From positions 12,772,001-12,836,000 of the forward strand of contig OZ241833.1 of NCBI GenBank assembly GCA_965202585.1: a DNA stretch of 64,000 nt. The letters are read 5' to 3'. Below are positions 20,611 to 61,779 of the stretch, piece by piece; position 1 is the stretch's first letter, and each line of letters begins with the position of its first letter. The notes below the pieces were generated by a model. It was given only the letters and a program-made list of their open reading frames with translations, did not search any database and was not told where the DNA came from. The position numbers were made by a program, and so were the translations under genes. The stretch is from Thalia democratica (taxonomy: Eukaryota).

Positions 20611-22080
20611 AGCTTTGTTTATACCTTTGCCTACTTTCGTCAAACTAATTATTAACAAAAAAACTAATTTTTATTTTTAAAAGAGCCCCAACTTTTACTT
20701 TCAAATATTAAAAACAATTTGATTTGTTTATGTACTTAATGGTAATTGAATCAATAAATGTCTAAAAGTTAACTAATTGTCTTCTTATTTACACAACTGA
20801 AAAACATAACATCCTAGACTTATTATTGAAGCAAAAATAAAAACTAACTTAACAATGGTAAACACGTTTTAAACTTGTATTAAAGCAACGAGTATTATTT
20901 TATTTATGTTTTAGAAATAAATATGCGCTGCTATTAGCTAGTTGCAATACTTCAGCTATCTTCAGCAAAATTGTACTATATTTTTCGCGATTATGTTTGC
21001 CAGATGGGTTCTAATTAGAACATAGCCGTCTCTGATTCTTTTTTTTTGATGGTCGTGTATTGAAGTCTAGTGCTTATTTTTATTATTAGCCTTTATTTAA
21101 ATGTTTATACTCTACTTTTATAGTGCCGTTATTCGTTCAAGTATATACTTACAGGTGTTTTTATTTTTGAAATCCGAAGCATAGCTGAGAAGATTTTTAC
21201 TAAATTCATATTTTTAACTTTGAAAAATAACAAGTTTCTATTTTATATTTTTTCTAGTTGTTTTTAATTTTTTGATTAAAATAAGTTTTTAAATTTTTTC
21301 GTTCTTTTCTACAAAAAAAATTCTAAAAATTACTTAGAGTTTTTCCTCTAATAAATACATAAATCCTAAATAACTGTTCAAAATATAAATTTAATTGTTT
21401 GTTAACATAAGTGTTGTTTTACTTTTTATTTACAATAGATTACATATAACTTTTTAAAATTAAAGCGCTCTGCTACTTTTTCTAAACATAAGTAATATAT
21501 CATCTAACTGTGTAGTTTAAAACAACTAGCTAGTCCTAATGTTCATATATATCGTGACGTAATTATTAGATACATTTTTTTCAATGATTAGTAACCAGTA
21601 AATATTTAGTAGTTCCTTCATTTTGATGGAAGTAGTTTATATTATTATTTGTATCTTATTTTGTATTTTACTTTAATTTATTTAATTTAAACTTGATAAT
21701 TAAAAATATTATATTGTTTTATAACAGTCGGATTTAACATTAAGTACTTTATTTATTATTAACCTATAAAATATATAGCAATTATTTTTATGTTTAGTGG
21801 ACACATGTATATACCTACTTTAGCTTCTATTCTTTCCTTACAGTATATATTTTTTACAGAGCTCAGTTGAAGTGTGTTGACTTGTTTAACACACAGAAAC
21901 ATATGTCAGTTTAATAAAAGAAGGACACTGTATAATTTGTTTTTTTAAATCACAAGTATTCGTTTAAAATTTTTGTGTAAACCAAAGTATTACAGTTTGA
22001 TAAAATCGTTTTCACACTAGTTTTGTTTTAAAACTTTTATAATTTCTAAGGTTTAGCACTTTCTTACTACCCTTTCTTAC

Positions 22081-40597: not shown

Positions 40598-43500
40598 CTG
40601 TAAAAAGTACTCAGAATAAATAATAACGCATATTGAAGTAGAAGTTATATAAAAATTATATTTTTGACTAACTTCTACAAACTTATTGAATTTGTGTTTA
40701 TAGTTAAAACCTATTAAGTGTTTAAAACAAGTATTTAAATTGTTTTTAATAATTTTCAAAATAAAACCAGAAACAGCTTTTATGTTCTGTAGTAAAAAAA
40801 TGCGAACTAACATGAAGCTCGTGAACAAAGCAACCGAATGTAGCCGTAATTTGTTTTCCAACTGTAGCAAGTGCGGACTTTGCAAAGTGCTCTGAGGACA
40901 CAAAGAAAAACCCACCGTTCTTATTATGAGTCATATTTGTTATTACAAAAGATGGTTTGATGCTCTATGATGTTTTTAAGTTATTAAAATACAAGCAAAA
41001 CGTGCTTTTGCTTTGTTATAGTCAAACAATGTGCATAAGATGTTTTAAAATAAAAATTTAATGTTCCTTTCCATGAATATTTGTTAAAATTACAGTTTAC
41101 ATTTCCAATATTACAAAAAAATACCTTGACACCGCAAAATTAGTTTTAATATAAAACGGTTAGTATAAAACTGTGTTTTTTTGCATTAGCAAGTGTGTTA
41201 TTCTAAAAAACATGGATTGTAACGCTGTTCGCTAACTCTAGTTATTGAGATTGCCGAGTTATTGTGTACATATAAAAAGTTAAAAGCAGTTAAATTAGTT
41301 AGAATATGTCGTGTGAACTGTGTTAGTGCGCTATTGTAACTTGTGTTTATTTTTGCGTTATTCATTTTTCTGCACCTTTCTTATATTATTTCATTGTAGA
41401 AAAAAGTTAATCAATTATTTGTATTAAAAATACTATACTCTTATAATAAAAATCTTAATAAAAAACCCGTTATCAGCCGGGATCGGCTATGCGTAATTGT
41501 GCATAGAGAATAAAAATAAATGATAATAATAAACTTAAAAGCACAGTGGTGCAATAAACAAAACAAACATATAGTACATAAAAAATACAAATAAATAAAA
41601 TTAAATGGAATAAAACTTATTCTGCTCTCATTTGTTCATCTTTTTCGGTTTTTTTCCCTTTCTTTCAGTCTTTTGTGTAAAGTAGATCTCCATTTGGTGC
41701 GGTCATTTGCAAGCAACTCTAACTCATCAGACCTTATATTTAAGCTTTTCAGGTCGCGCTTGCATACGTCTTTAAAACGTAATTTTGGACGATCTCGGTT
41801 GCGTTTGCCAACGACCAACTCGCCATACAATAGAGACATTGGAATTCGCTCAGCACCCATCCTCAGAACTTGACCGAGCCAGCGAAGCCTGCGCTGACTG
41901 AGGGAAAAGTACATGGTGGTAAGACTAGTACGTCTAAGCACTTCTTCGTTGGTGATCTTTTGTTGCTATACAATTCTAAGGATGCGACGAAGGTTTCGTA
42001 TCTGAAGAGTATTAGTTTTCTTCTTCTGCATACCAGACAACATCCATGCTTCACTACCGTATAGCAGAGTACTGCATACACAGGAATGATAAATAATAGC
42101 CTTTGTTCGAATGTTTAACTTTTGGTTGTCCCAAACTCTTGCAGTCAAACAAGCGAAAGTGCCTGAGGCTTTAATTTTTGATATCCTTGCCATTGATTTT
42201 GATTGATGGTAAAATATATGTTCCTTGACTTAGAACTTTAGTCTTCTTAAGACTCATAGTAATGCCGAAATCCGAGCATGCCGATGAAAACTGACTTAGT
42301 AGTGTCTGCAGGTCTTGGGCAGAGTAAGCCACGAGTGCAGCATCATCAGCAAGTAGAAAATCACGAATTGCAAGATTGAAAACTCGTCAATAAGTTCTTG
42401 TATGGACCTTGATACCAAATGTTGACGAACCAAAAGCATGCTTTAATAGCATTAAAAAGAATATTCCAAACAGAGATAGAGCAAGTACGCAGCCTTGTTT
42501 TACTGTTTTTTGATTAAAACTACCATTATATTCCACGGTTTTCCTTGTGTTTGTGTGAAAAGACTTCCAACATTAAAAAAATTTTGAGGACATCCAATCT
42601 TCTGAAGTATAGCAAACAGTCCTTCTCTACTCACTAGTCAAATGCTTTAATAAGGTCAACAAAAGCGATGTATAAAGGCAAGTTCTGTTCATTACACTTC
42701 TCTTGTAACTGGCGTACAGATAATATCATGTCAGTGGTACATCGTTAAGACCTAAACCCACATTGAGACTCAGGGTATACTAATTCAGTCAGATTCTGGA
42801 GTCGAGGAAGAAATACTTTTGCAAAAGCTTTACCAACAATCGCAAAAAGATAAACTCCCCTGTAATATTGTTTCAAAATTTTATAACAGTTTATAAAATT
42901 TTAAAACAACATTATCCAAAATCAAGAAAACACTTAAATTTGTCTAATGTCAATTTAAGTAACTTGGTTTTAAAAAAGTCAATAAAATTTCATAAATAGT
43001 GTTATAAAATTTTAACTAGCACACAGGAAAAGGTAAATCTACTGTACGACAATCAACTCCACTCCAAATCTTTCCTCAGATTCCTGTCTCTCACAATGAC
43101 TCTGCTGACAGTAGTAATTCCTCAAAGTGATTACAGTTATTATAGCAACAATTTCAAACTTTTTGTAGTATAATTTGTCAACATCTTATTTGTTGTTGTT
43201 TATAGCTTGCCCAACAACAAAGTGTTTTCAATTTAAAAATGGAAAATTGTAATTAAATAACGTTCCGTTACACTATCCTTCCTCACTTTTCTTTTAAAAA
43301 AACATGCACCCATCTCATAAATGTATTGTTTTAAAAAAAAAGTATAAAAACAACGCTATTAAAGATATGCAGTAACATCCCACTTTCCTTCCTCACTCTC
43401 TTCAAAGAAATAAACGAATGCATAAGTAGCCAAAAAAAATATATATATAAATAACATCACACTAAGATTATCGAAAAATTAAAAAATAACAAATAATAAT

Positions 43501-46500
43501 CATGGCGACAAAACCCATAAAAATTACATAGCATTACAGTCATGTAAAATGTCAAATCTCTAAACATAAATCAAAAACAATTCCATAGAACAGCAATTAA
43601 TAATCAATTCATTTTTTGAGTTGTGTATTAGGGAATTTTTTTAATGTTTACAATTATTATTAAATTTGCTTGGTTACTTTAAATTACACAAGCAAGATTT
43701 CATTAACTATTTAAACTTCCCAACACGATACAAACCAACAGAAATTAGTTTTCTTATAAAATAAAATGTTAGAATAAATTTTGATTTTTTGATGTGTTTT
43801 TTTTTCTCTTGTGTTAATAAAATAGTCTCAAAGCAAAATTTTAGGATTTTGTTTCAAAACTTGTCTTAAATTTAATAAGCAACAATTGCATCTAAGTTTT
43901 TAACCCAGATACAAAAAATCATACATAAATAAAATAAAAAAATCTGAAAGATGATTTGATAAATGCTGCCTGCCATAAGTTTTTTATTTAATTTTTTAGA
44001 GTTATTTAGATAAACAAATCAACTCAAAAACAAATCACTTTAAAAAACACAGAAAAAATAAAAAATGAATAAACAATCTATCCCAACTTATATATAATTG
44101 GTTTAAAACATTTAAAAATAGTTATAAGGATAAAATAGATCAAAAAAAAATGTTTATAAAAATGGATATTAAAAAAAAAATATTCTTTACAGTCCAAACC
44201 CAAAATAATCCATTATACCATTAAACATATCTTACTCTTCTGAAATATGGGTCTCTGCATAATTAACTGGCCCATGTGGCCTTAAATTATAACTATTATT
44301 ACCTTCCACTTCATCAGTAAGATTTAAAGGGCCAACATAAGCTTTAACATTTCTAATTGATACTTTCACAACATGGCAATTTTTTATTATGTACAAAGAA
44401 TGTTCTGTTGATTTACTTTGTCGCTATCAACAAAAGGTTTCTACTTATACACTATTATTGGCCTGGTTTAAAACGCAACGTGCGCTCTAACTTGTAAAGA
44501 AGATGCCCCCAAGATAACGCTTAAATTATAGTTGACTTAAATAAACTAATATGAATTACTTACTATTTACTAAAGGTTTAATAAATCAGTTACTTATACT
44601 AATTTAAACTTAGTTCGAATCTGTGATAATGATTATATTTACAATGAATTTGCGAAACGAAAAGATGGTAAAATACTGCACAACATTACACTAATAAACC
44701 AAATTATCAATTCTTTTAAAAGACGACAATACTCGAATAAAAGAAACTAAAAACTAAATGTTTAAACCAAACTCAATAGGTATTCTAAAACCGAAATCAA
44801 TTCGACAACAAGATTGAAACCATTAAAACTTAAGTGCAGCGAAAAGCTGCACTGAGTTCAGACCGCTTCAATGAAGTAGAAACTAAAAGAACTGAACTGT
44901 AAATTACTCGAGACTATTGAATTTATACTCGCTTGAGAAAAAAGAAGAAAGTAAAAAAGAGACAATTACCGCGTAAGCGGTACAACTTCTTACCACTTTG
45001 TATGGTCCTTCATACAACTTACCTAGCTTTTTCCTATTATGTTTTATCAGCCAAACATACTTACAATTAAAAAGGCCTGGCTGATAAAAAGGTGCATAAT
45101 TTTTAGTTTTTTTTTAATTTGCAGCTGATATCTGCCATGGAATTCACAAAGACCGCACATTCAAAAGGAGATGGTCTGGTGATTTGATTAATTTCATCAA
45201 CTTCGTCAAAAAGGACTCGGCCACTTAAATTTAAAGAGCATCCAAATGCATACTGGGCCGGGGTGTAGGGGGAACCTTCAATAAATGAGTTGTTAATGGT
45301 GCAAGTAATTAATGGGAGGTGGAGAGCCCAATTTGTTTTGTCTTCAAGTGACCGAAAAGCCACATTGATTGTTCTATTTTCTCTTTCAACATAACCATTT
45401 GTCTGTGGCGTAAACCTTTGCTCAATTAGTAAACCAAGAGGTGAACCTTTGCTCAATTTCCAACTGTTTACACGCCTCTTATAATAAATAATTTTTAAAT
45501 TATTTGCCGTTATCTGACAGAACAACCTGAGGTACTCCATAATGCCCTACCCAGTATTGTATAAATGCATTCCTAACAGTTATTGCTGTTTTATCTGGTA
45601 TGGAAGCCGTAACCAATAACCCAGTTGCTCTATTTTTTATCATTAGAACATATTGATAGTTAACTGACTTATCCAATAGACCTATAAGGTCTAAATGTAA
45701 AAATTAGAAGCGTTGGGTGTTATTGGGAAAAAAAACTATGTTTAGCCTGTTATGGTTAGAAACTTTTGTCTGCTGACACGTGGCGCAGTTATTAACCCAA
45801 TGGCTGACGTAATCCCTTAACTTAGGCCACCAGAAAGTTCTCGCTATGGCTTCTATGGACTTCTCAATACCCAATTGAAGCCTGTTATGGGCTGCGTTGT
45901 ACGCAGTCAGACGTAACGGCTCAGGCACTATGACACGTTTAATTCAATCCTCTATAATAAAAGCCATGCTTTCGTATGTTGTGAACTGGACTTCTTTTTT
46001 TAATAGGCGTGCTTGGTCAATAAGTCCTGGCTCCCTCCTTTGTTTGGAAAATTGCAATTGCCTCCATATCCAAAGTTTTAGGGCTAACAGATTCTACATC
46101 TGAGCTTGACATATCCAAATTATAAACTTCTGGAGTTATTAATTGCTCAGTGTTATCATAAACATCTATGTCCAGCTCGCTGTCACTAGACTCAGATTCC
46201 GAACTACACGAGTAATCCTGTATGTGTCAGGTGTAACTTACTTTCCCCGACTATTGTTTGTACATTGTTAATACCATTTTTAGTAAATAAAATATTGTTC
46301 TGAGTAGAGATGGCCAAATCTGAATTTGGTGAAAAACATGGGTCAATTTGATTGGTATGGTAAGACCCACTTAAACTTATGTTAGGCTCATTTGACTGAC
46401 CAAAAGGTCGTTATTCTTTTTTACTGAGGACGCCAATGATACCAGAGGAGGTTGGCACGCCAACTTCCAAGCGTTTGTTTAGAAGGGGTTAAATGGTTGA

Positions 46501-49500
46501 CTCATGGCTCAGAGGTTTTTGGCTCTGAATGCGAGCACTCTTAGCCCGAGTTTGAATCATAGTGTCTGGAATACACTGTGGATTTGGACTGACTCGGGAC
46601 AATAAATATATATAAAGCTAAGTTCAACATATATCACTTTCGGATTTTGAATGAGCTTAAATAATTTAAGTTAAACACACTTTGCATCTGTCCAACAAAA
46701 AATAAATGTCCTCTCAATAACAAATACTTAGTTGAAAATGCCATATATAAAGCAATAATCAGATCGGAAAACAAACAAAAAACTATTTTGCTCAACGGGT
46801 GGGACTTTCAAAAAAAGATGGTACAAACGTATCAGTGATTTTAAAAATTACAAATAAAACGGCACAGAAATATCGAAATACATCTGGAAACTTAAAATTT
46901 ACAATATTTATTATAAAACAGACTGAGAAATAAACCACTATATTGGTAAAACCAAAAACCCACAAAGTATTTGAAGTATTTGCATACTAAAAAAAGTCGC
47001 GATTGCCAAAGCCGACAGAAGATAAATTAAATAAACGGTACGAGCTCTTTTGTTCCTGCCCGCACTTCAAAATTTAAGTCTTAAGTTGTTCGTAATTTAT
47101 GCATGCTCTTAAAAAGTTTTTTTGTAGCTACTATTTTCTTGAAACTAAAATTTTTAATAAAAGCATTCAAGCAAAATTCAAAATTTTCATAGTCATTATA
47201 AGCATAAAATTCTTTAAATCTTCGATAGTTACGTCACCATAAAAATTAGCTACATTAAATGTATCTCAACTCAAAGCTCATTTACTACTATCAACTACAT
47301 TTTTATTTAAGCAATGTTAATTTTGAAAACTCACTAGAAGAAAAAAGAAACCTACATATAGATTCTTTTTATTATATTTTTTTGTATATTGATTTCGAAA
47401 CTTAACTAAAATTTAAACTTTACCCTAAATTCAACCATATGACTAAAATTTAATTTGTTTTTATTTATAAATTTATCTTTATTTAATTTATTAAATACTA
47501 TTTTCCATGACTGTTTCATACTTTTTTAGATTTTTTGTTTAAGCACTGACGAGGTCTTTGACCGAAACTTAGTTTGCATAATAAATTCTTGAAAGAATAA
47601 ATATATTTTTATTCATCTTAAAATAGTTCTACGGAGTTTTCATAGACTAATAGTAGTACTACTATCGATTTTATGAAAACTCTGTAGAACTGTGTTATTA
47701 ATTCAACAAATAAAAAGGTCGTTAATTACAAAAAATAAACTAAGTATGTGCTTTTCTAATTGTTGTTGTTTTATTCCAGGAAACGCCTGCTTTTTAAAAG
47801 AAGCGAGCCAATTATCCTAGAAAAAGTTGCTTGCGGACCGCCTTGTAAAAAAAGTCTTCTGCGGGCTGAAGTCAATTAAAATTGTTGTAGTAAAATAAGA
47901 AAACATTCTTTGTAAACCAAAAATACGAAAAAATAAGCAATAATAGAGCATGAATTAAGATGATTATTAAAATAACAGACTAACTTTAATTATTTACAAT
48001 TGTTCTCGTTGTTTTTAAAAAAAATGATTCAAGCTAAATGATACCTGTAAAGTTAAAAAATTTATCTTAAAATAAATTTAGTACCCAACAATAATTTCTA
48101 CTGACTCAGCTTATCTTGAAATACATATCAGTTACTAATCGTGCAAAAAATATTTCTCAGTATATTCTTTTATATAATAATATTTAATGAATAATCACTC
48201 AAACTAGTTATATAATATAACCTTGTAAACATTGCGTACTTAGTAGTTACTTTTTGGCTTTTAACTTTTTGTTTACAATAACTGATAGAAAAAAAAAACT
48301 AATGAATAGTATGTATTTACACAACGATTTTTAAAAAGTTCATGTTAAATTAACTAAATAATTTTTTTGGTGTTAAAAAAAGTTAGATAAAACAACAGAC
48401 AATATAAATGTTATTCAAAACCAACAACTAAGAAACATAGCAAAGTTTTTTTATTCTATTAGTCCAATTAGTTTAAAGAAAAAAAACCGTGCTAAAGTGA
48501 CCAACTGTAAATGTTACAATTTTTTCAACAATGTGGACATTGCTAAATAATACTCTGTACAAACAGAAAACTAACTCTTTAACTATATAAGTTTAAAACA
48601 GTATTGTGATAAACCGTTCAAACTAATTACCTACTTTAAACTCAAAGGTCAACTTTTTTATCTAGTTCTAAAAATTTATTATTATTGATTGTTATTATAT
48701 GCTTAGCAAATCAAACTTTTCACCATTATCTCAACACCACTCGTTCTATTTTCAATCTCAATTGCTTGTGAAAAGTAGTTCAGGAAACTTTTAGTTGCAC
48801 CATAAATTGACATGTAAGGAATTGGTCTAAACGAACTAATTGATGAAATATTGAGTATAAGTCCTTTTTTGTTTTTCTTCATCACTGGAAGTAACATTTG
48901 TGTCATCTGTTTTTTAGTTGTTAAAATTTTGTTATGAATAAATAGATGTTTTGATTTTTGAAACTTATTGTAAATTACTTTTGTAACATACATATGTATA
49001 ATTTCTTATATAAAACAAAATCTCTTTGCAGAGATTTCAACGTTCTTAAACTAACTCTGAGTTGAGCCAGTATGTTGACATTAACCATGTCATGACAAGC
49101 TGTAGAAAGATCATCAATCTCAGTAAACATGTCTAAACTATGCATCATTCCAACATTGTTAATTAAAATACCTATGTCAGAAAATTTAGATAAAAATTTT
49201 GAAATATTATCATACTGTTCCTTACGACTATCCTTGAAATCAACTTAAAGCGTTTCAGTTACAACATTATGTGCTTTTCTAATTGTTGTTGTTTTATTCC
49301 AGGAAACGCCTGCTTTTTAAAAGAAGCGAGCCAATTATCCTAGAAAAAGTTGCTTGCGGACCGCCTTGTAAAAAAAGTCTTCTGCGGGCTGAAGTCAATT
49401 AAAATTGTTGTAGTAAAATAAGAAAACATTCTTTGTAAACCAAAAATACGAAAAAATAAGCAATAATAGAGCATGAATTAAGATGATTATTAAAATAACA

Positions 49501-52500
49501 GACTAACTTTAATTATTTACAATTGTTCTCGTTGTTTTTAAAAAAAATGATTCAAGCTAAATGATACCTGTAAAGTTAAAAAATTTATCTTAAAATAAAT
49601 TTAGTACCCAACAATAATTTCTACTGACTCAGCTTATCTTGAAATACATATCAGTTACTAATCGTGCAAAAAATATTTCTCAGTATATTCTTTTATATAA
49701 TAATATTTAATGAATAATCACTCAAACTAGTTATATAATATAACCTTGTAAACATTGCGTACTTAGTAGTTACTTTTTGGCTTTTAACTTTTTGTTTACA
49801 ATAACTGATAGAAAAAAAAAACTAATGAATAGTATGTATTTACACAACGATTTTTAAAAAGTTCATGTTAAATTAACTAAATAATTTTTTTGGTGTTAAA
49901 AAAAGTTAGATAAAACAACAGACAATATAAATGTTATTCAAAACCAACAACTAAGAAACATAGCAAAGTTTTTTTATTCTATTAGTCCAATTAGTTTAAA
50001 GAAAAAAAACCGTGCTAAAGTGACCAACTGTAAATGTTACAATTTTTTCAACAATGTGGACATTGCTAAATAATACTCTGTACAAACAGAAAACTAACTC
50101 TTTAACTATATAAGTTTAAAACAGTATTGTGATAAACCGTTCAAACTAATTACCTACTTTAAACTCAAAGGTCAACTTTTTTATCTAGTTCTAAAAATTT
50201 ATTATTATTGATTGTTATTATATGCTTAGCAAATCAAACTTTTCACCATTATCTCAACACCACTCGTTCTATTTTCAATCTCAATTGCTTGTGAAAAGTA
50301 GTTCAGGAAACTTTTAGTTGCACCATAAATTGACATGTAAGGAATTGGTCTAAACGAACTAATTGATGAAATATTGAGTATAAGTCCTTTTTTGTTTTTC
50401 TTCATCACTGGAAGTAACATTTGTGTCATCTGTTTTTTAGTTGTTAAAATTTTGTTATGAATAAATAGATGTTTTGATTTTTGAAACTTATTGTAAATTA
50501 CTTTTGTAACATACATATGTATAATTTCTTATATAAAACAAAATCTCTTTGCAGAGATTTCAACGTTCTTAAACTAACTCTGAGTTGAGCCAGTATGTTG
50601 ACATTAACCATGTCATGACAAGCTGTAGAAAGATCATCAATCTCAGTAAACATGTCTAAACTATGCATCATTCCAACATTGTTAATTAAAATACCTATGT
50701 CAGAAAATTTAGATAAAAATTTTGAAATATTATCATACTGTTCCTTACGACTATCCTTGAAATCAACTTAAAGCGTTTCAGTTTCAACGTTATATTTTCT
50801 TTCTGTTTTTTAAGGAATTTATATTGTTTTTATAGTTTTAGTGCATTAGTTTCTGAGCCGTTTTATATCATTTATTATCACTATTTAATTTTAAATGAGC
50901 GGCTTTCCATTATTTTAAATCTAGTTAGCTTTATAAATTTTTCTTATTTGTTACAAATAGCTAAAGTTCTAAGGCGCATATGCTAACATTTACAAGTACT
51001 TAGAGTACATAAAAGTTATTAAAGTAAATTAAACAATCTTAAAAAACACTTGATAAGGTACTCTGCCACCTTCAAACCAGTTTTTCTCTAAAATAAGTTG
51101 TAAAATTGCTTTTAAATAAAATATTTTTTTATGCTCGAACAAAGTTAAAAAAAGTGTTTGTAAAATATTAAAGACTTTGAAAAGTTTCTAGTCTGTTTTA
51201 TAGAGTTCAAGCTTGATGAAAATATTTTAAGTGATTTTATACTTGTAAAGGAAAAAGGCATACGTCTTAAAATTTTTGAGTTAATTGTACGTTGTACTTT
51301 ATTGAAAAGAGTCCGTAAAATATAAGTTTAAGAAAACAAGTTAACATGCTTTACTAAAGTTTATTTTTCAATAGTCCTTTTTTACTCCATACCAAAGTGA
51401 AAAAAATTATAGCAAAGTATAGTTGTTTTTTAATACTTATAACAAATCTATTTTAATTCAGATTAAAACAATTTATCAACATTTTGAATAGTTATAATAA
51501 GATGCTTAACTTCTACCATGTTAACTTAGTGTTAAAAAACATTATTTTCAGTAAACTAACTGATTTCAGTGGCTGTTTGTTTTAGTTTAGAATTGTCTCT
51601 ACTGATGATTATTAAATTTACACCTTTTGAAGCAAGCTGTGTTTAATAAAAAATATACCTTTTAAAACGCTAAAAAAAGTTAATTAGGTTATAATTAATC
51701 ACTTTCATTTATAAACATTTAATAAATATAATTATTAAAGTAGTTTTAATAATGAAGAAAATCTATATAGTTATTTTTCTTAACTAAAAAAGATTGCTTA
51801 ATTTACTGAAATGTAAAGAGCTTATTTAAATAAAGAAGAAAATCTAAAAAAGTCTAAAAATTCCTTAAATTTTCTCAGTATTATAAAACAAAACTAAACC
51901 CGTAAGTTAATATCTTTCTTAAGATATATTCCAGATAATTTTCAAAATATATTTGAAACTTACACATACAACTTGAATGTCGTTTTCAAATTGAAACTGT
52001 TTAACTTGTATTAATACTGTAATCTTAACTTTATTAAGTATAAGTTTTAGTTGTTTAAAAGTAAAATTATTACTCAAAAAAAAAAATTTTAGAAGAGACA
52101 CATTATTTGAGTTTCATTGTTAACTATTTTTATAAAAAGTCTCTATTTAAGATTTAAAATAAAATATTGAGAATAGTTATGAGTTGCAGAGCTTTAAGTT
52201 TAACTAATTAAAATTTTACAGATTTTTTTTTACCTATCAGATTAACTTTCATAAACCATTATAAAAGCGGCAATTAGGTTAATACAAATTGTAAGTTTTT
52301 AAAACTTTTTTTTTTGAAATAATAAGAGCTTTAAAGTACAAAAACGTTTTTCAAAACTATATAGAATTTTATCATGGCATGTTAAAACGGCTAGGAGTCT
52401 AATATGCACGAAGGGATACTTTTGCAAGAAGGTTCAAATATGCACAAAGACGCTTTTGCACGAAGACACTTTTGAACGGCGTCAATTTTGCATGATGGGT

Positions 52501-55500: not shown

Positions 55501-58500
55501 TAGTGGCATTATGGATAACCCTCTGCCAAAACTTTTTTATTTTTTAAAGTTACCTGCTTTATACAATCGATGGTAGACCTATTTATACCTAAAGCTATGT
55601 AGACGTTCTTCCAAGATGTTAATTTAAAAAATTTATAATGACTTTTTTTTTTAATTTTCATGTAAACTTAATAACTTACACAGCTTCTATTATATGAACG
55701 TAGAATCGAGTTGAAATAAATTAAATGTTTGATTGAAAAGTTTAACTAAGAAAAGTTATACCATCTGAGTTTAAAAATTAGTTACTTAGTTACTTGTAGC
55801 TTATTTCTAGATTTTCAAGTAAATAAAAAATTCATCGTACTTATTTACAGCTAATGTAAATAATCTTGTCTAAAAACATTAGTTAATGTAAAGAAATTTG
55901 ATAGTTACACTAAAAATTTACAGAAATAATTAATCAGTTTAAGTTGTAAATTACGTAACTAATAACTCTGTAAGCTAAAATAAAAACAAGCAGTAACAAA
56001 GGAAAACTAAACTATAAAACCATTATAAAAGTAAAATATATTAGAAAATAGAAAATTGTTTACAAAAATAAAATCTATAAATTGCTCTCAGAACATTTAA
56101 AAAAACTAGAAATAAAATTTACAGCAACAAACTAGGTAAATACTTCAACATAAAGGATTAAATATTACACGAGCTGAAATGTTATTTAGTCTATAAGTTT
56201 AAGTGTTTTGAAGAAAAAGGCGTTTAGTATAATAAAATTACTTTTTAATTATTACCTGAACGATTAAATAACACAATATTTACAAAACAACAAATATTTA
56301 TAATATGGAAAATTGTAAGGTTATTAAAATATACATAATTTAATAGTTTTTGATATATCGCTTATACATTATACTACATTTTATAACCTTATAAAACAAC
56401 TATTTCTGCAATTACCTTTGTATATTCTAAATAATATTTGCAGCTACCTTTATTTCAGTTAAACTTGAAGTTGAAAATTATTATTTATTTTAATAAATTT
56501 TTTAATCACAGTCAAATTTATAAAATTATTAGTTAGTATTGTTATTTTTTTAGTTACAGTAGTCTACTTTCTGTGATTGAAAATTAATGAGGGAAAGTTG
56601 CAAGTAAACGACGGCATGAAAAAAACTTTGTAACTTTTTGTTTTTAAACTGATTCTCAATTACTTTTGAATTGTAAAACAGAAGTTGTAAACGTTATTTT
56701 AAGGTTTAGGTACACTTATACGTTAGTTAGAATGTATTAACTACTTAAGTACTTAAAAAACCGAAATAATATTGTACAGTAGACTACCGCTTAAGTACGC
56801 ACTTTTTTTGGTACGCACCTCACCTTAAGTACGCACTTACCTAGAAAGACAAAAAAATTCTAAATTTTCTTAGACTTAGATTTTTTCTAAAGATTTGTTC
56901 CATAGAGTCATTTTCTGACGCTTTCAATCCATTTTTCTAAATTTCTCTAAACTTTTCTAAAATTTATAAAAAATTTTTATTCAAAAACTTTTAGAATATC
57001 TGCAATAGAAAGGCTAATTTAAATGTGACATAATACAAAACTAGTTAACCACAAAAACTAGTTACAATTTTTATAAAGTCAAAATAAACATATAAAAAAA
57101 AGAAACAACAACAAAAAACTAAGTTTAAAAAAAGTTAATAAGCACCTTATCATTGTGCACTTATACTATAAATGTTTCTACTGATATAAAATTTCTTACA
57201 AAAACAGTCCTGAAACGTTTTTCTTTCAAATAAAATAAAATCAAGGTTTTTTTAGCTAACGGAAAAATATAATAAATGTATTAACTAAACTAAACTTAGC
57301 TTGACTAGCATTATGTAGAAACTTTTTATAGAAAAAATAAATCATTTTAAAATCTAATAAAAAATTTTGCAGATTAGAATTATGTATCAAATGCTATTTA
57401 AAATAAAAAGACTTGTTTATTTGGCTTAATTATTTGGTGGCTAGTTGTAAAGAGAAAACAAATAACTAAATTTCATATTATACTATGTCGTCAAAAAGTA
57501 CGCACTACCCGTGCTAAGTACGCACTTTTTGGTCGGGTTCAATTTGCGTACTTAAGCGGTAGTCTACTGTAATTTAAAAATAAGTATAACAGACAAAACT
57601 TTATTTTTGCTTTGCAATTACTTTCAAACAAACTAAGTATCAGTGAGGCTCTATATAGACTATGGAAATTATTTTATGTTTTATGTCCATTTCCAACTAA
57701 CTCTATTCTTTAGAAAATCACTTGTTGCTTTTTTATTTAAAGTAACAAAAGTATTAAACACTTTGTAATATTTTTTAGTCTTTAATTTAAAAATATTTAC
57801 TTAGAAACTTTAATAATCTTATTTCAAACAATTGTAACATATAAACTTAGAAAAGTATAATAGAACTTTAATAATAATTACAAATTTATGTTATAGTGCA
57901 ATAGATTGTGCATAACTAATTGAAACAATTTACTTGATGTGCTATAGCTTTTCCAATTCCATTTGTTCCGCCAGTGACAACTAAAGTTTTAAATTAAATT
58001 ACTTTAAATATTTACACTTGTATCAGATGTCCACTTGTTTTATCAATTAGTCAATGTATTAGAAAAATCGATCTTAAAATCATTTAAGTGTATATAATAT
58101 AAAAGAAAAAATCAGTTTTATTCATAGTTAAAAACTTTAAAACAAAACAAATCATTATGAATTTATATCAAAAAAAAGAAAGTTTAAGATATAAAAGTTT
58201 TATTTATTTTATCTGAAAAGTAGTTATAACTTAGCGAGTATTTATTTCTATTTATAAATTTTATTTAGATTCTTTACTAGTATATAAATTTTACAAGTCT
58301 TTTAATCAAAAAAACAGAGTACTCAATTGAAAACGAACAAGCTACTATATTTATGATATAGGAGGCTGTAGAAAATAAAATATTCTAATGTAAATTCGTT
58401 TATTTTCTTAAATCGGTGTTAAAATTAAGCTATATTTTAAACATAACGTCTTACCTGCCCAACTTCCATACTTTTTAAATTCAACGTAACTTTTGAAGCC

Positions 58501-58617: not shown

Positions 58618-59495
58618 ATTTACAAATACTAATTGTTTTCAGTATCTAAAAGTTAATACTCGACTACTAAGTACAAATTATTTACAATCGAACTTTCTTT
58701 CAGTATTACTTTGGTAGTTAATTTTTAATTAAATTTACGACTATACCTCAAAAGACTTTGTATAAACAAAGTCTGTTTGAAATGTAAATAAGTTTAACTT
58801 TGTTAGCTTAGTTTAACCTCTAACAAGTTTTAAAGTAAAAAACTATATAAAAAAAATTTGTAAAAAGTTTTTTATCTAACACAAATATGAAATAAAAAGA
58901 AGATTAATGATTATTATACATGAGAAACTTTTTGAGTAAAAATAAGTAGCACAATAATGTAATAAAGTTGTTATGACAAGTTGTAACCTTTTTAGATTGT
59001 TTGTTTTTCTTTAGAAAATTTTTGTTATGCTTTACTCTAACTTGGTTTGGAGGTTATTGTTAGCAATATAAAAAAAAATTTAAACAATAATTACTAATAA
59101 TTAGACAACTTAAAGTTTTATTTAATTTTTATCTGAAACGATTTACTATTATATATTTATGTTAAATAGATACACAATGCGTTCTAATTTTATATAGTCA
59201 AACTATTTACTTTAAACAAATTAAAAAGCAATAACTTAAATTATTAGCAAGCGAAATAAAACATTAGACACTAGTAAATTTATTGAAATTGACAAATTAA
59301 AACAAGTTTTAGTTAATACGCCACGATATGAAATTTTGCAAAATTTTAAGAATTCGCTAAATAAAATTCATTTTGTATTGATTTAGTTGCAAGTAGCCCC
59401 GAAACATTTGGCAGCAAAATCGAAAATAGTGGTTTTTATCTTAATATGTGATTACAAATTTAAACAGTACTCTTTTTTTTATTATACTAAACATG

Positions 59496-61453
59496 CACAG
59501 TGGGCTGAAAACGGGGATCAAGCGGCCATCAACATAAAACTGTCATAAGAAGCACTATAATACAATTTAAAGTTGCACTTAGTGTTACAATCAGAATAAT
59601 GTTTGTTTTTATTAAAAATAGTATAAATTTTAATTTTTAATGAAACTTTAAAGAAAGAAACTTAGAAAAAAAGAAAATTATAATTGGCTACCTCAAGAGA
59701 GTCACATTTACTTCCATTTTAGTTTAAATATGAATGAATTTTCAATATCAAGCCGGGTGAAACTATACTCTAAATACAATTTATTTTTAACTTAATGATG
59801 ATCTTTGTATATCAAAGTTTGTATTATTAATAACGTTACATTTGTACTAGTTTATCAAAAGAAAAAAAACCGTAAACATTTTGAACAATAAAAACATTTA
59901 TTTGTTGCAAAACAGTGCAAAAAACAAAATAATTTAGCCTGTGATTAAAAAAAAGCACTTTAAAGTTACTAGAAAACATAATTCAAACAGTAAGTTCTTA
60001 AAACTTCTTTGAAATTAAGTTTCTCAAATAAATAAAACATTCTATTCAGTAGCACAAAGCATATGTAAAACGTTTCCAATTCTGATATACATGATGAAAT
60101 TTTTTCATTTAGCTGCAAACAACTTCGCGCAGTATGTCCGACTTTTTTACAATAAGTGCAATTCAGTCTGTCTAAAGTGTTGTTAACATCGTAGTCACTC
60201 TTGTCCCATAATCGATTTAAACAGTCTGTTAAATTTTCATACTGAGAAGTTTTCCTTGAAAAGTTCATTCTGTACTGTCTTAGAAACTTGTTGTTAGCTT
60301 CCAATCCACTTTCGGTGTAATTTAGCAAACCTCTACCGTTGTTTTGCTCAATTAGTTCAGCACTATGTGCAAGAACAGTATGCGCATTTGGAGTAAAGCG
60401 AATCCATTTAACCGACATGACCAGCATCATTGTTTTTTGAAATAAAACTGAGTATTTCTCTAAATTAATCTTTCTGTTAGAATTTATAGGCCATAAAATA
60501 ATGGAAACATACAAAATAATTTTGTTAATGTTTTCTTTTAAACTAACATCAGAAATATGTTCGTCAGCAGAGTCCTATTATTGGTGTTTGGCAAAGTTTT
60601 GACTGCGTTACCTGTTGTAGAAGTTCCACCATGGCCTGTGGGATACGGTTTTTCAAGAAAACCTTTAATTAGCTAAAATAGTTTAAAAAAAACTATTTCA
60701 ATAACTAAAACATATACTAAGCTACCATGTTTTGACCAATACTAACTGTTCTCATGATCTGTAAACAAAAGTAAGTGAATCTATACACATTAAGAACCTT
60801 CTATAAGATACAAAATGGTCTTTTTTGTCACAGTGAAAAACCAGGGATAGAATATTATATCAATTTTTTTAACAGAAATATCGCTTGTAAAAACCTAAAA
60901 AAATAGTTATATTCCACATGATAGATTTGTCTGTAAATTTGTATATAGATTCCTTGTCATTTTTACTAAATTATTAAAAGAGAAATTATGTTGGTTCTAC
61001 AGTGGCGAATTGAGAAAATTAACCCTGAAGAACACCCTAAATTGCCAGAAATTATCAATAAATTTTCGGCAAGAATAGAAGATTTTAAAATTAGAAATAA
61101 TATACTTTTACATTTAAATATTCAAAGAATTTTGACTTTTTGCAATTAACATTAAACCAAAGTAATGAAAAAACTTAAAAAAAAGTATTTGTATAAAAGC
61201 TTATAAGGTGTTTTTTAAGAGTAGATGTAGACCTTAATTTTGAAAAAAATTTAAGCATTTTTCGAGGCTTTTTTAAACTTAAAAAAGCAAACTTTGGCTA
61301 CATTTAAGCTTACATAACTTTTAGTATACTTTAAGCAGCAGAAACAAACCCAGTTTTTAAAAGACGAAACCCCTCTCTAAACAATTAAATAACAATCTTG
61401 CTATAACTGTTTAGTCGCGAAAATAGTCAATGGCCACTTGCCAGCCCACTGTG
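59496..61453 (-). mobile_element. Internally deleted Transib / RAG1-like DNA transposon
   Basis: 12-bp perfect TIR CACAGTGGGCTG; perfect 5-bp TSD ACATG (59491-59495, 61454-61458); minus-strand transposase remnant. Confidence 0.92.
59969..60760 (-). pseudogene. C-terminal fragment of Transib/RAG1-like transposase
   Basis: PTGHGGTSTTGNA; TPNAHTVLAHSAELIE (cf. RAG1 HKTLAHVPEIIE); YTESGLEANNKFLRQYRMNFSRKTS (cf. RAG1 [22 protein letters not shown]); tail CTYCKKVGHTARSC. Confidence 0.85.
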
Positions 61454-61779
61454 ACATGTTTCCGTGTGATAACAAGTTTACATACTTCAACGGAGCTCTA
61501 TAAAAAATAAATACTGTAAGAAAATAATAGAAACTAAAGTAGGTGTATATATGTGTTTATTAAAAATAAGAATAAGTTCTATAGATTATTGTAGATTAAT
61601 GGTTAATAATAAATAAAATATAAAATGTTAAATCCAACTGTTATAAAACTATAAAATATTAGTAATTATTAAATTTAAATTATGATTAAGTAAAGTAAAA
61701 TACAAAATAAAATAACAGGTCTAAATATAACGTACTCATATAAAAGTAGTTGTAAAAATATTGATTCATAAGACTAAAC

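Follow-up and report, generated by a model that had tools for sequence, protein, structure and literature searches.

The zinc knuckle encoded in the 64-kb stretch of Thalia democratica DNA analysed here (the window) is very probably the native tail of the transposase of a Transib-superfamily transposon, of the type known as Subgroup I and not of the RAGL type, and the copy that carries it is a dead derivative. The motif, CTYCKKVGHTARSC, has the form C-x2-C-x3-G-H-x4-C, is 14 residues long (60160..60119, minus strand) and lies in an open reading frame (60514..59969, minus strand) whose translation contains AHTVLAHSAELIEQNNGRGLLNYTESGLEANNKFLRQYRMNFSRKTS and then LNCTYCKKVGHTARSCLQL / RLNCTYCKKVGHTARSCLQL. 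It stands in frame with RAG1-type ZnH2 histidines and a catalytic-glutamate motif, within the last ~190 residues of the transposase.

The preliminary description gave this motif as a feature of RAG1L tails that is missing from jawed-vertebrate RAG1, and in this the literature bears it out. The CCGHC motif defines the CTT* of BbeRAG1L and is found in essentially all invertebrate RAG1L (Martin 2020, PMC7204232), while jawed-vertebrate RAG1, with its acidic tail, does not have it (Martin 2023, 10.1101/2023.08.20.553239). Its use as a marker of the RAG1L lineage does not stand, since the tail is the usual form in a very large clade of Transibs and had already been identified in Transibs (Martin 2023, 10.1101/2023.08.20.553239; Tao 2022, PMC9435367). 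For the same reason, a CCGHC tail taken alone does not indicate a RAG1L/RAG2L element.

Anatomy of the relic

The host element occupies 59496-61453 (1958 bp) and has CACAGTG-type ends, both termini reading CACAGTGGGCTG (on the plus strand from 59496 and on the minus strand from 61453). It is bounded by an identical 5-bp target-site duplication, ACATG, with the left copy at 59491..59495 and the right copy at 61454..61458. In the 3' terminal inverted repeat (TIR; 59496..59529, plus strand), box 1 (CACAGTGGGCTG, 59496-59507) and box 2 (TCAAGCGGCCAT, 59518-59529), both read on the plus strand, are separated by a 10-nt spacer (59508-59517), while in the 5' TIR (61430..61453, minus strand) box 1 (CACAGTGGGCTG, 61453..61442) abuts box 2 (GCAAGTGGCCAT, 61441..61430) with no spacer. 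The asymmetry between the two ends, 0 nt at the 5' end versus 10 nt at the 3' end, thus equals one helical turn. Both arrangements recur among the relatives described below: the 3' ends of L001 and L002 show box 1 and box 2 at a distance of 10 nt, and the boxes are adjacent at the 5' ends of L001 and L009.

The main transposase remnant (59969..60574, minus strand) is made of a stop-free frame (59972-60574) and its stop codon (59969-59971), and contains the ZnH2 histidines (AHTVLAHS), the catalytic-E motif TESGLEANNK, the C-terminal domain, the knuckle (60119..60160) and a tail. Its segment 60562..60092 is homologous to P0020, a sequence comprising the last 339 aa of a close relative. The native end of the gene (60042..60071, minus strand) now lies in another frame: compared with the marine metagenome contig L003 (95% identical), one nucleotide near 60069 is deleted, and the reading frame changes after ...ISELET. 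As L003 shows, the original protein ended in ...LLHMLCATE, with its stop at about 60044-60042, some 20 residues past the knuckle. Upstream, a frameshift near 60560 splits the main remnant from a second transposase fragment in a different frame (GHGGTSTTGNAVKTL, 60541..60672, minus strand), the counterpart of MNGNFARKL in RAG1.

Searching with full-length relatives (tblastn) shows that only the last ~190 residues of the transposase are retained, in two pieces (60657..60092). The 5' part of the element (60673..61429, minus strand) has no transposase coding, and the N-terminal pieces of L001, L002 and P0041 found no tblastn match in it. An internal deletion joins this 5' part to the transposase at residue ~151, counted within the C-terminal 339 aa, and this position of the junction means that ~500 codons are missing. 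The N-terminal ~70% of the transposase has been deleted, and among the catalytic and zinc residues the copy keeps only the His pair and the E motif. With its internal deletion, the frameshift near 60560, the 1-nt deletion near 60069 and its intact ends, the window copy is a dead deletion derivative. It would make no enzyme, and could be mobile only in trans, given the transposase of a full-length copy.

Outside the element, the 198 bp by its 5' end (61456-61653) are 82% identical to positions 21712-21902 of the window, and the relic therefore lies within or beside another repeat.

Relatives of the element and distribution of the knuckle

With the window fragment as query, a word search brought up 39 fragment proteins that share 45-89% identity with it, along with a few weaker matches; owing to a length filter, this search covers short fragment proteins only. 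Entries from Caligus rogercresseyi are among them, with the UniRef label 'CCHC-type domain-containing', and all intact fragment homologues keep C-x2-C-x3-GH-x4-C followed by a short conserved ending. Because the word search is blind to the full-length kin of a 200-aa fragment, an exhaustive search was run with P0020 as the query. It yielded 1723 proteins at E <= 1e-3, and those that span both ends, among the matches listed, measure 670-794 aa. A profile word search with a 28-sequence family profile gave 14 matches. The nearest database look-alikes come mostly from arthropods, rotifers and marine metagenomes, the nearest ESM Atlas clusters being 'hypothetical proteins' of ~700-740 aa, mostly from arthropods and rotifers, and the element is present in marine metagenome runs.

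The full-length copies come from contigs of other organisms and are 52-58% identical, or less, over the shared C-terminal part. Two contigs carry copies that are full-length but frameshifted. In one of them, L001, the element measures 3990 bp from TIR to TIR, is flanked by a CCGCC duplication, has the 0/10-nt asymmetry of its ends and ~700 transposase codons, and on both strands contains no further ORF of at least 90 aa. An intact, knuckle-bearing transposase of 774 aa (P0195) is encoded by a 4324-bp element found in three marine metagenome contigs, L006-L008 (L006:57-4380, ends CACAGTGGGCCC), with flanks that differ between L006 and L007. The ends of the L006 copy are asymmetric, with a comparable difference of ~10 nt, and the 1.1-kb 3' part of the element in L006-L008 holds no ORF above 60 aa. 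The flanking 5-mers of L006-L008 do not match as a target duplication, perhaps as a result of assembly chimeras; the element may be active.

The exact 24-nt 5' TIR of the window element was also scanned against the JGI metagenomes, and was found in one contig, L010. In this contig, which has 37% GC, positions L010:3425-3449 match the 5' terminus of the window element over exactly 25 nt, comprising the 24-nt query and one additional base. L010 has no other similarity to the window element and no transposase, and is possibly a non-autonomous relative in another organism.

Judging from these relatives, a full-length element would be about 4 kb long and carry one gene, encoding a DDE (RNase-H-fold) transposase of ~720-790 aa. 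The protein would comprise an NBD-like region, the catalytic D-D-E, a ZnC2/ZnH2 site, a RAG1-like insert after ZnC2 and a C-terminal domain, with a single C-x2-C-x4-H-x4-C knuckle ~20 residues before its end. By analogy with RAG1, RAG1L and HzTransib, it would bind CACAGTG-type ends, pair two unequal ends, cut by a nick-hairpin reaction and insert with a 5-bp duplication. If it works like the CTT* of amphioxus RAG1L, the knuckle would bind one zinc ion and clamp the end DNA just inside the heptamer, and the NBD-like region would presumably read box 2.

The knuckle is common in the family, but it is not universal. It is intact in about half of the 36 matches of at least 560 aa, where it lies 19-43 residues from the C-terminus (with one outlier at 86), and some of the rest have a degenerate knuckle or a basic stretch instead. 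Aligned C-terminal halves contain an intact CCHC in 28-31 of 50 cases, a count that varies with the pattern window, and the exact GH form in 21 of the 50; across 35 aligned homologous tails, the zinc ligands C, C, H, C are invariant. On an unrooted tree of the family, from which the tail columns were omitted, the knuckle is found in every major clade, and its state changes 11 times, at least 6 of these changes being forced by well-supported branches. This distribution suggests a knuckle that is ancestral and was repeatedly decayed or lost, the direction of change being read from an unrooted tree.

The same number of changes, at least 6 to 11, could also be taken to mean that the knuckle is not homologous to the CTT* of RAG1L, and that a generic CCHC was gained independently, for instance from a retroelement Gag. 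The tail profile lends itself to this interpretation: against the PDB it matches generic zf-CCHC knuckles of the nucleic-acid-binding type (TUT7, Air2, retroviral/HIV NC), and the BbRAG1L chain is not among its sequence matches. The motif has the canonical form C-x2-C-x4-H-x4-C, and retroviral-type zf-CCHC (PF00098) shares both its ligand spacing and the G before the H, although in our family there is a single knuckle, on a DNA transposase, presumably for transposon-end DNA and not for RNA. Position argues against an independent gain, as both tails occupy the identical place, directly after the C-terminal domain. So does the presence of the knuckle in all the major clades of a very diverse family, and so does the comparison of structures described below, where BbRAG1L alone among the RAG1/RAG1L rows spans to the last residue of the model (1-339 to 807-1121) and thus includes the knuckle. 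Also, the knuckle tails of Transib and RAG1L have been treated as one domain type, CTT1 (Tao 2022, PMC9435367). We therefore regard an independent origin as unlikely.

Relationship to Transib, RAG1L and RAG1

The preliminary description held that the element is nearer the RAG1L lineage than a minimal insect Transib. This is only partly so. In sequence, the family has more in common with HzTransib than with BbRAG1L: P0020 alone scores 59.9 bits against the former versus 24.8 against the latter, and with the 28-sequence family profile the scores are 264.5 bits for HzTransib, 215 for BbRAG1L and ~150 for RAG1. The window fragment behaves in the same way, its best PDB sequence match being HzTransib (E 4.3e-7), followed by amphioxus RAG1L (1.2e-5) and vertebrate RAG1 (~0.06-0.1). 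Its Pfam matches are weak and sub-threshold, both to zf-CCHC (15.6 bits) and to RAG1 (PF12940, 18.7 bits). The catalytic and zinc-site residues are common to all: in the family profile D, D, E, CxxC and HxxxxH align with HzTransib, BbRAG1L and RAG1. In full-length relatives the catalytic residues align to D600, D708 and E962 of RAG1, and the Cys2 and His2 to its zinc ligands, and the NBD-like region aligns to the RAG1 NBD (3gna, E 0.0014).

The part of the claim that stands rests on architecture. Besides the knuckle at the position of the RAG1L CTT*, the family shares with RAG1/RAG1L an insert of ~40 residues after ZnC2, and HzTransib is without both. Profile positions 413-467, which immediately follow the ZnC2 cysteines, can be aligned to RAG1 and BbRAG1L without a break, whereas HzTransib has only ~14 residues to match them. 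From its position, we infer that this insert is alpha11-12; it is seen in the relatives, the window copy having lost it. We also compared an AlphaFold model of P0020 (pLDDT 91.3) with solved structures. The matches to RAG1 have a VIA Z of 20-22 over 279-290 residues, with an rmsd of 3.4-3.8 Å in the top rows; BbRAG1L has a Z of 20.3 over 302 residues (rmsd 5.7 Å), and HzTransib a Z of 13.5-17.4 over 174-261 residues (rmsd 2.9-6.6 Å). The predicted C-terminal half thus superposes better on RAG1 and BbRAG1L than on HzTransib.

Set beside the family, HzTransib (Helicoverpa zea; PDB 6pqn and related) has DDE, ZnC2 and ZnH2 residues that align and likewise no RAG2 partner, but it differs in lacking the CCHC knuckle, its tail being of the 'CTT2' type (Tao 2022, PMC9435367), as well as in the residues missing after ZnC2 and in its lower structural overlap with the model. 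Amphioxus ProtoRAG BbeRAG1L (PDB 6b40) and invertebrate RAG1L share with the family a CCGHC tail that follows the C-terminal domain, a ZnB segment, heptamer-like TIRs and a 5-bp duplication. Unlike the family, which has neither, they are accompanied by a RAG2L gene in convergent orientation and have a long zinc-finger/RING region at the N-terminus, and their sequence similarity to it is lower than that of HzTransib.

These features are those of a Transib type that has already been described. Transibs split into two subgroups (Tao 2022, PMC9435367). Members of Subgroup I carry the CTT1 knuckle, have TIRs that are always asymmetric and possess, within the zinc-binding domain, an equivalent of alpha11-alpha12; this subgroup stands closer to RAG1L. 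In Subgroup II, to which HzTransib belongs, the tail is of another kind and the alpha11-alpha12 equivalent has been lost (PMC9435367). Our family has the general features of Transibs, namely a RAG1-core-like DDE with ZnC2 and ZnH2 (family profile), 5'-CACAGTG TIRs with a 5-bp duplication (ACATG in the window, CCGCC in L001) and a single gene with no RAG2-like partner (L001, 3990 bp; L006-L008, 4324 bp). It also has those of Subgroup I: the CTT1 motif C-x2-C-x3-G-H-x4-C, found at 60160..60119 of the window and conserved among the relatives, the segment corresponding to RAG1 alpha11-alpha12 (the RAG2-contact segment) in the relatives, its identity deduced from position, and asymmetric TIRs in the window and in L001, with L006 comparable. 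The family thus fits Subgroup I, an assignment made by shared features and not by placement in a tree. Known Subgroup I Transibs (Hydra Transib-9_HM, ctenophore and bacterial elements; PMC9435367) have, like the family, one transposase gene and no RAG2L, a CTT1 tail, a RAG1-like post-ZnC2 segment, asymmetric CACAGTG TIRs and a 5-bp duplication, and differ as full elements from the window copy, a 1958-bp deletion derivative. The relic is accordingly another case of a published Transib type, and its combination of features is not new.

It had also been proposed that the internal deletion could have removed N-terminal domains or a RAG2-like partner. The loss of most of the N-terminal part of the transposase agrees with the first half of this proposal; as for the domains and the partner, the full-length relatives have no RAG2-like ORF and no Pfam match to the N-terminal zinc fingers of RAG1. 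A decayed RAGL (RAG1L-RAG2L) transposon, deprived by the deletion of its RAG2-like gene and of the N-terminal domains of RAG1L, would account for the tail, present in virtually all invertebrate RAG1L, for the RAG1-like ZnB insert and for the better superposition on RAG1/RAG1L than on HzTransib. Yet the relatives are 4.0-4.3 kb long with one long ORF of ~700-790 aa, and a search between their TIRs (L001, L006-L008) for the RAG2L that the preliminary description had envisaged found no kelch or PHD match in the other ORFs. RAGL elements are recognised by a convergent RAG2L (kelch with or without PHD) between the TIRs, which the relatives lack, and by a protein of ~900 aa or more with N-terminal RING/ZDD and C1-C3 fingers. 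The relatives have 670-794 aa, and in seven full-length or N-terminal ones there was no Pfam match to RING, zf-RAG1 or RAG1_imp_bd (importin-binding). A third mark of RAGL, a PF12940 (RAG1 core) score above the gathering cut-off of 25 bits, is found in P0087 (33.7) and P0195 (26.0) only, most relatives scoring 15-26 bits. The fourth, the CCGHC tail (CTT*), is present but is not diagnostic, because it is common to Subgroup I Transibs. Together with the closer sequence similarity to HzTransib, this leaves a RAGL origin largely refuted already and very improbable. What the preliminary description had named as telling against its reading is largely what we found: ordinary Transib clades commonly bear the knuckle, with no second ORF.

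That the motif arose by chance within an AT-rich reading frame in decay, as the frameshifted and non-functional state of the window copy might suggest, has practically no probability left and is already refuted: it lies in frame with the conserved core, the six-frame translation of the window contains the strict motif a single time and 0/200 composition-preserving block shuffles contain it (a loose motif giving a mean of 0.02 matches across the 200 shuffles), and it is kept, with invariant ligands, in dozens of homologues, which confirms the zinc-knuckle tail claimed after the RAG1-like core.

Wider reading and other features of the window

Taken by itself, the window copy is an unremarkable relic. 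The family to which it belongs is a well-populated case of the 'Subgroup I' architecture, the proposed stock of RAGL transposons and ultimately of the vertebrate V(D)J recombinase, and its intact marine-metagenome members could serve for testing the knuckle and the asymmetric ends in a context without RAG2. Intact ORFs of 774-794 aa with good ends are present in several marine metagenome contigs. It is conceivable, though on balance we consider it rather doubtful, that the family represents a widespread and possibly active Transib lineage of marine invertebrates that has all the modules of the RAG1 core and no RAG2 partner; these modules would be the NBD-like region, the ZnB segment (which contacts RAG2 in RAG1), the CCGHC clamp and the ends that are asymmetric by one turn. 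If so, the family would offer a natural proxy for the hypothetical ancestor that preceded RAG2, and a tractable means of studying the role of the 'RAG2-binding' segment before RAG2. Alternatively, the family may depend on a partner encoded elsewhere.

Several other features of the window deserve mention. An inverted pair, 56498-56521 / 59929-59952, is 88% complementary (CACAGT / CCTGTG), with its arms ~3.4 kb apart and lying just outside the transposase stop. As it does not bound the transposase remnant, we rejected it as the ends of the Transib element; it is probably due to chance, or may represent the ends of a different, second Transib-like element. A perfect 27-nt inverted repeat, TACAGTAGACTACCGCTTAAGTACGCA (56775-56801 / 57545-57571, arms 743 nt apart), resembles the termini of a small non-autonomous DNA transposon. 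By visual inspection, the minus-strand ORF 41636-41941 is similar to the C-terminal tail of a protein from a non-LTR retrotransposon, and the minus-strand ORF 45103-45540 to the core of a retroelement integrase; on this visual basis, both would be other decayed mobile elements. Two identical 96-aa ORFs (48703-48993 / 50226-50516, minus strand), ~1.5 kb apart and containing YGATKSFLNYFSQAIEIE, have the appearance of a fragment, duplicated in tandem, from a gene of the short-chain dehydrogenase-like kind.
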